Assembly (NCBI RefSeq): GCF_000142905.1
Contig: NW_013657666.1
Coordinates: 196,631-260,630 of the forward strand
Direction of reading: 5' to 3'
DNA: 64,000 bases
Source: Thecamonas trahens ATCC 50062
Lineage: Eukaryota > Protista > Apusomonadida
The notes below the pieces were generated by a model. The model was not told where the DNA came from. It worked only from the letters and a program-made list of their open reading frames with translations, and searched no databases. Both the position numbers and the translations under genes were made by a program. Every line of letters starts with the position of its first letter. Positions within the stretch are counted from its first letter, which is position 1. Shown here piece by piece: positions 56,804-59,800 of this stretch.

Positions 56804-59800
56804 ATGGCCGACGACCCCTCTGTGTACGCACCCACCACCCACCATGCTCTCCTCTCCCCTTTCCCCACTTTCCCGTCTTTCTCCTCCATGTTCCCCTCCG
56901 GCTGTGAACAACCCCTGTAGCCCCTTTGCGAAAGTTCCTTCTGCCACCCGACGAAGGCGACCCGCGACCGGTGGGCTGGCGGGCGACGGGCGGCATGGCA
57001 GACGGGGTTGCTGATGACGCTTCCGCCTGTCAGCAGTGTACCTGCCTCCCTACGTAGGCATGCTGCCGCAATGCGAGGGCACAAAGTAACATGCGCAGAC
57101 GCAGACGGAGCCTTGCTTCCGCTGGTGGGGCCGAGCCGCTCGGTGGTCGCCTGGTTTTTTGTCTTGTGAAAAGAGGGGGGTGGGGAGCGGGCAGTTCCCG
57201 CACCTGGGCAAGCGACTCACAAACGAGGGAGGAAATGTGGGGACAGTCCGAAGGACACGAAGCAGGACGAGATCGCGACGGCGATCCTGCGGAAGAAGGA
57301 CCGGCCGAACCGGCTGGTGGTCGAGGAGGCCGAGAACGATGACAACTCGGTTGTTGCGCTCAACACGGCGACGATGGAGCGGCTGCAGCTGTTCCGCGGC
57401 GACACGGTGCTGCTGAAGGGCAAGAAGCGGCGCGACACGGTATGCATTGTGCTTGCAGATGACACGTGTGCCGAGAACAAGATCCGGATGAACAAGGTGG
57501 TTCGCAACAACCTGCGGGTCCGGCTCTCGGACGTCGTCTCGATCCACCCGTGCCCGGACGTCAAGTACGGGTCGCGCATTCACGTGCTCCCGATCGACGA
57601 CACGATCGAGGGTGTGACCGGCTCGCTCTTTGACGTCTTCCTCAAGCCGTACTTTCTCGAGGCATACCGGCCGGTCCGCAAGGGCGATCTGTTCCAGGTC
57701 CGCGGCGGCATGCGCGCGGTCGAGTTCAAGGTTGTCGAGACCGACCCTCTCCCGTACTGCATCGTGGCGCCCGAGACCGTCATTCACTGCGAGGGCGAGC
57801 CGATCAAGCGCGAGGACGAGGAGCGGCTCGACGACGTCGGCTACGACGACATTGGCGGCTGCCGCAAGCAGCTCGCTCAGATCCGCGAGATGGTCGAGCT
57901 CCCGCTCCGCCACCCGCAGCTCTTCAAGTCGATCGGCGTCAAGCCACCGCGCGGCATCCTCATGTACGGTCCGCCCGGAACTGGAAAGACCCTCATTGCC
58001 CGCGCTGTTGCCAACGAGACGGGCGCGTTCTTCTTCCTCCTTAACGGGCCGGAGATCATGTCCAAGATGGCCGGAGAGTCAGAGTGCGCCATCGGCTCGA
58101 CCATCGTCACCGACTACGCCGGTGTCGGCCGCCGCATTGACACCTACGACACCCGGCACCAGGTCCTGACCGCCACCGTCCCGACCGGTGCGGGCGCCGC
58201 CCCGGTGCCGCTCCCGGGCGAGGCCCCGCTCGACTTTGACGCCCGCCGCGTCACGTCTGCGCTCTCGGCCGCCCCGGCTGAGTACCGCAACAACGGGCCG
58301 CGGACCCAGTTTGTGGAGATTGTTGCCCAGGACGGCACCGAGTTGGTCTTTACTCCGGACCACCTGTTCTACGCCCGTGCGCCTGGTGCCTCTGACTTTG
58401 CCTACACTCCGGCCAAGGAGCTCACCACCGAGCACGTTCTCTGGGCGCAGGCGCTGCCTGTTACCGGCAACACCGACCATACGGTTGCGCCCGGATCGGC
58501 TTACGCCGCCGCACTCGCGTCGCCCGCCGTTCGCGCGATCGCCCTCGGCGACGACGATGCCGCGCTGGCCGAGACCATGGCCGTCCTTGGCCGCATCGCC
58601 GGCCTTGTGATGGGCGGTGGGTCTTTCACCGGCCGCCGCGCTCGCGTCATTCTTGGCAGCCGCCTCGATGTCGATGCGCTCGCGACCGACCTGGACCTGC
58701 TCGGCTTTGAGCTCGGCGCCACGCGCTTTGTCAACAACGAGCGCACCCTGGTTGACGAGGAGTCGAGCAACATGTCTGGCTGGGAGTGTGCCCTGCCGGC
58801 GGCTGTTCGTGACGCCATCGCGGAGATCATCCCTCTCGACGCCTCCGGCCACAAGAAGTCGTTCCACCTCCCGGCGGTCTTCTCCTCCGCGCCGCCCCTT
58901 TTCCGGCGCGAGTACATTGCAGGCCTCCACGGAGCGGACGGCGACAAGGCTGTCGCGCGCTCTGGCGACTCCCGCCGCACATTTGCTGTCATGGGCACTT
59001 CCTTCTCGAAGGACTTCTCCTCCGCGGATGGGCCTTCGCAGGCTGAGCTCGGCGAGCTCGAGGCGTACCAGGCCGCTCTCATGGCGGCATACACTGACCT
59101 TGGGGTGGCTGTGCGCGTCAACAAGACTCAGGTCCGCTCGCACGCGTTCAACGACGACCTCGCGTCGTGCGTGTACACGTTCGACCTTGTGAGCGAGCCC
59201 AGCAACATCGTTGCGTTCCAGCGTAACATCGGCGTCCGCTACAGTGCCACCAAGGCCTCGAGCTTTGCCGTCAACCGCGGCATCACCGGTGAGCTTGCTC
59301 GCAAGAACAACGTGTACAACACAGTTGTTGAGAAGCTGTTGGAGAAGGCCCTCGTCATGCTCGGCAAGCACTCGTCCTCCAACTTGCGCTCGCAGGTCAT
59401 CGGCCAGGTTCTCGGCGAGCTCAACGATCACGATGCTCTCTTTGCCCCGACCGAGGTTCAGATGGACGATGCATGGGAGTCTGTGCTGCGCTTTGTCAAG
59501 GATCAACTCGCCACCACGGGCCACCCGCTTGACGAGCCCATTCCCGCTGACGTGGCTGGTCGCATCATGGATGCCAACCGTGGCCGCACCATGGACGCTC
59601 AGGTCGAGACCGACTTTGTGACGTCGACTCGGAGCTGCCCGGCTGCTGGCCGCGACGCGGCGTTCCACGGCGAGCTGGGCATCAAGGCTGTGGCGCGCGT
59701 GACGCGCCCCGCCGAGCCGGTCTACGACCTCATCGTCCCGCGCGCAGCGCACTTCCACGCCGAGGGCATCCTCGTCCACAACTCGAACCTTCGCAAGGCG

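Follow-up and report, generated by a model that had tools for sequence, protein, structure and literature searches.

A previously catalogued LAGLIDADG-type class-1 intein in the CDC48 gene of Thecamonas trahens

The CDC48 gene, its insert and prior record

The window analyzed here, a stretch of 64,000 nucleotides from contig NW_013657666.1 of Thecamonas trahens ATCC 50062 (positions 196,631 to 260,630 of the forward strand), carries the gene for the unfoldase CDC48/p97, AMSG_03752 (protein accession KNC47319). The coding sequence is interrupted by an in-frame insert of 566 codons at 58085-59782 on the plus strand. Translation of the insert showed no stop codon, a Cys as the first residue and His-Asn as the last two, directly before a Ser, as the original prediction had proposed from the DNA sequence. 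The insert is a full class-1 intein that includes an endonuclease domain of the LAGLIDADG fold. The features of the gene are as follows, with positions numbered from the start of the window, residues numbered from the first residue of the intein, and A2 denoting an alignment of the insert with five related inteins:

56804..56823, plus strand: CDC48 exon 1, 20 bases encoding Met-Ala-Asp-Asp-Pro-Ser and two bases of a Val codon, in agreement with the N-terminus of AMSG_03752
56824-57246, plus strand: CDC48 intron, GT...AG, the only intron of the gene model
57247 to the stop at 61348, plus strand: CDC48 exon 2, from the gene model
57247..58084, plus strand: N-extein, comprising the N domain and the start of D1, through Walker A and the pore-loop region, to ...AGESE (Pfam; p97 residues 28-283)
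58085..58459, plus strand: N-terminal Hint half of the intein, residues 1-125, with Cys1 and block B (TPDH, 58352-58363) (motifs; predicted model compared with the Mtu RecA mini-intein)
58499..59239, plus strand: predicted LAGLIDADG-fold core, residues 139-385 (predicted model, I-Tsp061I match, NCBIfam RtcB-intein model, A2)
58580-58627, plus strand: LAGLIDADG motif 1, residues 166-181, with Gly178 at 58616-58618 (A2)
58901-58948, plus strand: LAGLIDADG motif 2, residues 273-288, with Asp285 at 58937-58939 (A2)
59246..59632, plus strand: predicted post-core helical extension, residues 388-516, mostly common to the related inteins (predicted model)
59666..59782, plus strand: C-terminal Hint part of the intein, residues 528-566, with VYDL at 59720-59731 and His565-Asn566 at 59777-59782 (TIGR01443; residues invariant in A2)
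59783..61348, plus strand: C-extein, comprising Ser+1 (59783-59785), the rest of D1 including Walker B, D2, the C-terminal tail and the stop (Pfam; p97 residues 284-805)

The conceptual precursor of 1373 amino acids was 100% identical to AMSG_03752, and the insert is enclosed by an open reading frame (ORF) of 1343 codons at 57317-61348. The DNA here is 66% GC, and an antisense ORF of 1203 codons, 58079-61690 on the minus strand, also crosses the CDC48 gene. This antisense frame is probably a by-product of the GC content and a strong third-position GC bias. Because it spans the gene as well, an open frame by itself is weak evidence for coding at this locus. The combined evidence from motifs, profiles and fold for an intein is far beyond chance.

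The flanks of the insert read ...SKMAGESE at the end of the N-extein and SNLRK... at the start of the C-extein. The two exteins were searched separately. The N-extein aligned with residues 28-283 of human p97 (806-residue chains) and the C-extein with residues 284-805, so that the two alignments abut with no gap, no overlap and no residue lost or duplicated. The insertion point is therefore E283|S284 of human p97. It falls within the AAA domain of D1, after Walker A, just past the pore-loop stretch and before Walker B, in agreement with the approximate position given in the original prediction. Conservation with p97 beside the insert was 75-80%. Pfam found CDC48_N, CDC48_2 and the start of an AAA domain on the N-terminal flank, and the remainder of that AAA domain, AAA_lid_3 and the second AAA domain on the C-terminal flank.

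Within the 28.7-Mb T. trahens assembly, the insert sequence occurs as a single copy. The CDC48_N domain was likewise found in only one gene, and the next AAA paralogue was 45% identical over part of its length. Since AMSG_03752 is the sole CDC48 orthologue in the assembly, the CDC48 function of the organism must come from this gene, and splicing must therefore precede CDC48 function. This bears out the proposal in the original prediction that the protein has to be spliced before it can work. The essential unfoldase of T. trahens would thus depend on protein splicing.

The original prediction had considered that the intein might be new, a possibility removed by the catalogue of Green, Novikova & Belfort 2018 (Mobile DNA 9:4, PMC5784728), which reports a nuclear intein from one apusozoan protist and counts one intein in Apusozoa. 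Additional files 1, 2 and 5 of that study cover the Thecamonas CDC48 intein: file 2 lists it under KNC47319, and file 5 contains it as the FASTA record 'CDC28i_Thecamonas_trahens_APUSO'. The host is named 'CDC28' in Table S8, with the orthologous group KOG0730, which is a mislabel of CDC48. That entry is the same object as ours, being identical in its 566-residue sequence, in the end of the N-extein (...MAGESE) and in the start of the C-extein (SNLRK...). The Thecamonas CDC48 intein is thus already catalogued, which refutes its novelty by the criterion set in the original prediction. A supplementary figure legend gives it as HEN(+), that is, with a homing endonuclease as scored by size; the catalogue names no endonuclease family and contains no RNA, structural or site analysis.

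To the catalogue entry we add RNA-library contigs that contain the insert, a predicted fold of the whole element and an analysis of the insertion site. Also new are the glycine at position 178 in LAGLIDADG motif 1, the split of variants between intein (4:1) and exteins (0:3), the distant relatives on giant-virus-like contigs and the archaeal inteins at a GESE motif in D2, all described below. Nuclear inteins are few outside fungi, and the Thecamonas element is one of them; among eukaryotic inteins, it is the only one that we could place in the p97 D1 ring. It does not represent a new kind of system, but it might offer a natural setting in which to study how an AAA+ hexamer deals with a large insert before splicing.

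Intein motifs, predicted fold and presence in RNA

The insert contains the full set of class-1 residues: Cys1, T90-x-x-H93 (TPDH, residues 90-93), V546-Y-D548-L (VYDL, residues 546-549), H565-N566 and Ser+1. For comparison, the inteins of five relatives were cut from their contigs and aligned with the Thecamonas insert to give A2. In this alignment, C1, T90, H93, V546, D548, H565 and N566 were invariant. Other invariant columns fell in the first LAGLIDADG helix (R170, I171 and G173), in the second (R275, E276, G280, G283, D285 and G286) and after the core (G383, R385 and K390). The complete class-1 signature named in the original prediction, with its TPDH and VYDL blocks, was confirmed.

When the A2 profile was compared with solved structures, it matched mini-inteins at both the N- and C-terminal blocks, with E values down to 5e-15. 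These included the Npu and Ssp DnaB inteins, Mtu RecA, gp41-1 and the Pho CDC21-1 intein. Taken by itself, the insert is divergent in sequence. The TIGR01443 model (intein_Cterm) matched it with 19.8 bits, above its cut-off of 15.6, and the intein part of the NCBIfam model NF038162, an RtcB-intein model, matched residues 164-395 with an E value of 2e-8. A search of the single intein sequence against the sequences of the Protein Data Bank (PDB) returned no relative, and a PHROGs search gave nothing meaningful. The only other weak match to the Pfam Intein_splicing family in the genome (C3, E 0.56) lay within a kinesin gene and was dismissed as noise.

A structural model of the intein was built with AlphaFold2 from the six sequences of A2, with a mean pLDDT of 65.9 and a pTM of 0.54. 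In the model, a beta-rich part (residues 1-125) is followed by two alpha-beta-beta-alpha-beta-beta-alpha units (139-385), five helices (388-516) and a final set of beta strands (528-566). According to this model, the two parts of a split Hint domain enclose a core of the LAGLIDADG fold. The modelled Hint part (1-125 and 528-566) superimposed on the Mtu RecA mini-intein with a Z score of 17.0 and a root-mean-square deviation (rmsd) of 2.5 Å over 135 of 139 residues, and the model matched gp41-1 with Z 16.8 and rmsd 2.1 Å over 124 of 127 residues. Residues 121-407 matched the endonuclease I-Tsp061I with Z 14.2 and rmsd 3.2 Å over 180 of 204 residues (all three with VIA-align). The best PDB matches found by Foldseek were the TliVMA, PI-PfuI and PI-SceI inteins, with E values from 6e-9 to 1e-6, followed by the free-standing endonucleases I-DmoI and I-Tsp061I with TM-scores of about 0.5.

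Two parts of the model lie outside this common framework. A Pro/Ala-rich loop in the Hint domain, located within 58175-58258 and comprising residues 31-49, was private to the Thecamonas intein and had pLDDT values below 50. The extension after the core consists of predicted helices at residues 388-425, 431-449, 457-478, 488-499 and 506-516, with pLDDT values mostly between 55 and 75. It had no Pfam match, and segments of it aligned in four of the five relatives. Since most of it aligns with these four, the extension is a feature of the family rather than a private insertion.

The architecture is that of PI-SceI (the VMA1 intein), PI-PfuI, TliVMA and PI-TkoII, in all of which a split Hint domain surrounds a monomeric LAGLIDADG core with two motifs (Foldseek E values from 6e-9 to 2e-4). 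Identity to these inteins was only 10-13%, and the Thecamonas intein differs from them in lacking the Asp of motif 1 and in having the helical extension of about 130 residues and the Pro/Ala-rich Hint loop. Differences in domain arrangement and in model quality kept the overall TM-scores low, at 0.2-0.3.

We then turned to RNA, mapping contigs from four RNA libraries onto positions 57300-61400. Contigs from two subsurface metatranscriptomes, of 1777 nt (58045-59821) and 1906 nt (57916-59821), spanned both junctions of the insert with four differences each. A 496-nt contig from a seawater metatranscriptome (57917-58412) and a 190-nt contig from a single-organism transcriptome (57940-58129) spanned the N-terminal junction with no differences. 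The depth of the intein contigs, about 9, equalled that of neighboring exon contigs. No exact 58084>59783 joint, which would correspond to an intein-free RNA or allele, was found among the contigs of the four libraries. The ends of the insert are TG...AC, in contrast to the GT-AG ends of the real intron of the gene. These observations support the expectation in the original prediction that the insert stays in the mRNA, with no sign of its removal as an intron.

Joints near 58084>59784 that skipped the insert did occur in the metatranscriptomes. They were rejected as products of RNA splicing, as all of them had replaced letters and are attributable to intein-free CDC48 of other organisms. In skipping contigs of runs X1 and X2, for example, base 59783 was replaced by G, giving Ala in place of Ser+1, and the samples that contained them also held many CDC48 fragments of other organisms with 90-95% similarity. 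Most likely, these contigs are intein-free CDC48 sequences of other organisms; their 30-base flanks would also be compatible with a close relative that has no intein.

Proposed splicing of the precursor and state of the endonuclease

The original prediction had described two LAGLIDADG-like helices. Both motifs are present, at residues 166-181 and 273-288, but the first has no acidic residue. In A2, Gly178 occupies the position at which the catalytic Asp is kept in all five relatives, whose motif 1 follows the pattern x-R-I-x-G-x-x-x-x-D-G-(S/T/H), with D-A-S at its end in one relative. Motif 2 of the Thecamonas intein retains its acidic residue, Asp285. In PI-SceI and I-DmoI, the acidic residue of each motif binds a catalytic metal, and the loss of either one prevents double-strand cleavage. 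The homing endonuclease in CDC48 probably no longer makes double-strand cuts, and the element would now be a fixed remnant.

A second line of evidence came from eight differences between the reference and the environmental and transcriptome contigs. The intein had four nonsynonymous and one synonymous difference, and the exteins had none and three, respectively. All four amino-acid changes in the intein, at residues 252, 323, 360 and 465, lay in the endonuclease core or the helical extension. Although the numbers are small, this distribution suggests that constraint on the endonuclease region is relaxed. Codon usage in the intein was close to that of its host, as the GC content at third positions was 0.82 in the intein and 0.86-0.88 in the exteins. 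The 40 codons before the intein (57965-58084) included ten ending in A or T, compared with an extein mean of 5.2 per 40, which is in the top 1.6% of windows of that size, for a region picked post hoc; the 40 codons after the intein included two. The upstream cluster is a marginal signal that might be an old co-conversion tract, or might be due to chance.

If the endonuclease were still functional, the intein could be an active homing element that cuts intein-free CDC48 alleles and is copied into them by recombination. In favor of this are the complete LAGLIDADG fold and the Asp285 retained in motif 2; the HEN(+) score by size (Green et al. 2018, PMC5784728) and the A/T-ending codons of the N-flank, if these are indeed an old co-conversion tract, also point in this direction. 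However, Gly178 replaces the Asp found in motif 1 of every one of the five relatives, and both acidic residues are needed for a double-strand cut. Most variants in the endonuclease region change an amino acid, the genome has no second copy, a scan of 1.84 billion representative proteins yielded no allelic relative, and no exact intein-free allele appeared in the mapped RNA-library runs. Active homing is thus unlikely at present, and the description of the insert in the original prediction as a selfish homing element probably applies only to its past.

We consider it likely that the catalogued class-1 intein is canonically spliced from the CDC48 precursor, that its endonuclease has decayed and that it is now a fixed, vertically inherited remnant. 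The steps of splicing proposed here follow the canonical class-1 pathway. Transcription and translation would run through the insert to produce the precursor of 1373 residues, in which Cys1, helped by Thr90 and His93, would undergo an N-S acyl shift. Attack by Ser+1, the equivalent of the native p97 residue S284, would generate a branched intermediate. Asn566, helped by His565 and Asp548, would then cyclize, and an O-N shift would restore the ...GESE-SNLRK... backbone. Closure of the D1 AAA fold, between the pore-loop region and Walker B, would have to wait for splicing. With an endonuclease that has no metal-binding Asp in motif 1 and is seemingly under relaxed constraint, the intein would most likely be a remnant passed on vertically, and the signs of decay fit a late stage of the homing cycle. 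It would persist because an imprecise deletion would destroy the only CDC48 gene, and not because it is still homing.

Several points weigh against this reading. The scan with Hint and LAGLIDADG models suggested in the original prediction was only partly successful: TIGR01443 scored above its cut-off, as described above, whereas the match to Pfam Intein_splicing (E 6e-5) reached 23.2 bits, below the gathering threshold of 35.8, and Pfam LAGLIDADG_3 matched neither the protein nor the genome nor the excised domain. The AlphaFold2 model, built from an alignment of six sequences, was only moderate in quality (pLDDT 65.9, pTM 0.54). The RNA evidence consists of assembled contigs from RNA libraries, which may hold some DNA. 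Protein splicing of the CDC48 precursor, while the most likely outcome, is a prediction from the residues and the fold. Finally, the proposed decay of the endonuclease is drawn from one residue and eight variants, and would be compatible with a nickase or a compensating residue.

A further alternative is that the intein has been co-opted as a conditional switch, responding to redox state, metal or stress, that sets the amount of active CDC48. Conditional protein splicing has a general precedent in other inteins. Beyond this general precedent, the Cys1 nucleophile, the three other cysteines of the intein (residues 235, 362 and 518) and the retention of the intein in an essential gene would be in keeping with such a role. 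On the other hand, neither the end of the N-extein (E-S-E) nor positions +1 to +3 hold a Cys for a disulfide trap of the known kind, and the lethality of imprecise loss explains the retention well enough. The redox or metal switch considered in the original prediction has no support here, and we regard a switch function as improbable. Least probable of all, to the point that we give it hardly any credence, is that the insert is an unusual intron removed from the RNA or a non-splicing, permanent insertion in D1: the weakness of a long open frame as coding evidence in a GC-rich genome and a possible carry-over of DNA into the RNA-library contigs leave some room for it, but the TG...AC boundaries, the contigs from three studies that cross the junctions at exon-like depth, the replaced letters in all skipping contigs and the presence of the full set of splicing residues with a Hint fold all argue against it, and a 566-residue domain placed permanently between the pore-loop strand and the next AAA helix would be hard to square with flanks conserved at 75-80%.

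Related inteins and the insertion site

A word-indexed search of 5.8 billion clustered proteins with the intein region only returned just the Thecamonas protein itself. When 1.84 billion representative proteins were scanned in full with phmmer, six weak matches emerged, with E values from 1e-6 to 1.5e-4 and identities of 23-33%, none of them in CDC48. Five of the six were scanned with Pfam and were RNA-polymerase second-largest subunits or a family-B DNA polymerase (PolB); four of these five matched Intein_splicing. The sixth (P0007) had Rpb2 and an intein in a precomputed Pfam record. The Thecamonas intein shares with these inteins (P0002-P0007) blocks that include N-I-G-x-R-Y-x-x-T-K after the core, and most of the helical extension. 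It differs from them in that they occupy other host genes, and are thus non-allelic, and that all of them keep the Asp of motif 1. An identity of 23-33% supports membership in a shared intein family rather than a recent transfer.

The closest relative came from a cellular-looking locus, an RPA2 gene among genes for a ribosomal protein, a tRNA synthetase and deoxyhypusine synthase. Several contigs of other relatives have a giant-virus-like look, with runs of orphan ORFs together with a gene for RPB5 or a poxvirus-type VLTF3. An RNA-polymerase second-largest subunit encoded on one giant-virus-like contig (P0003, L091:2949-5873, residues 624-1598) had two inteins, at residues 624-1100 and 1111-1598, separated by ten extein residues. 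The family motifs A-R-I-V-G-L, R-E-F-L-A-G-L-F-G-G-D-G and I-G-I-R-Y-S-A-H-K were also recognized by eye in the Spizellomyces punctatus RIR intein listed in Additional file 2 of Green et al. 2018, which, also by eye, has Asn instead of Asp in motif 1.

CDC48 itself has been found with inteins in other organisms. Gallot-Lavallee et al. 2023 (PNAS, PMC10710043) describe a CDC48 intein in Anaeramoeba ignava, and CDC48 is reported to be an intein host in prokaryotes too. We sampled 301 Halobacteriota genomes for over-long ORFs with a CDC48_N domain, for which 150 of 655 matches were listed, making this a sample and not a census. Among the matches listed, at least three CDC48 genes of 1211-1227 codons carried a LAGLIDADG intein of 380-391 residues in D2, with Ser as the first residue:

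L084:1915-3087 (G019:C14), and the matching parts of L085 (G094:C1) and L086 (G126:C10): archaeal CDC48 inteins, in D2

The archaeal site reads ...KWVGE | S-I-T-G-D-E ... H-N | S-E-(R/K)-H-V-R, in which the intein splits the GESE motif of D2, paralogous to that of D1, as GE|SE. The D2 position that corresponds by paralogy to the Thecamonas site in D1 lies two residues downstream of this. The archaeal and Thecamonas inteins have in common the host family, the GESE motif after the pore loop, the LAGLIDADG type, the His-Asn end and Ser+1. They differ in that the archaeal inteins lie in D2 and not D1, start with Ser1 and not Cys1, and are 380-391 residues long; only generic intein similarity was detected between them (pairwise E 1e-4).

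The original prediction had proposed looking for inteins at the same GESE|SNL site in other organisms. No allelic CDC48 intein, with the same D1 site and a related sequence, was found in the protein and pattern searches, with the site of the Anaeramoeba ignava intein lying outside this comparison, and those of archaea split GE|SE in D2, as described above. In 241 million metagenome records, no intein was picked up by a degenerate DNA pattern for G-P-E-I-M-S-K-x-x-G-E-S-E-Cys, and this pattern had no matches in the viral collection. The only match to the pattern (L094) was a low-coverage, error-ridden fragment of a eukaryotic CDC48 gene that was free of an intein, and it was rejected.

As a tentative suggestion, which we hold to be possible but somewhat doubtful, E283|S284 in D1 could be a unique insertion point, shared with no other known intein, that was invaded non-allelically by a member of an intein family otherwise at home in the RNA-polymerase and PolB genes of protists and giant viruses. 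In that case, inteins would have entered CDC48 repeatedly and independently at its post-pore-loop GESE motif, in D1 in the apusomonad and in D2 in archaea.

The searches also returned contigs filed under bacterial and archaeal metagenome-assembled genomes, including those of Leadbetterella, Verrucomicrobia, Clostridia, Methanobrevibacter and others (L004-L015), with CDC48 sequences 72-83% identical to that of Thecamonas. These look like eukaryotic contamination of the respective bins.

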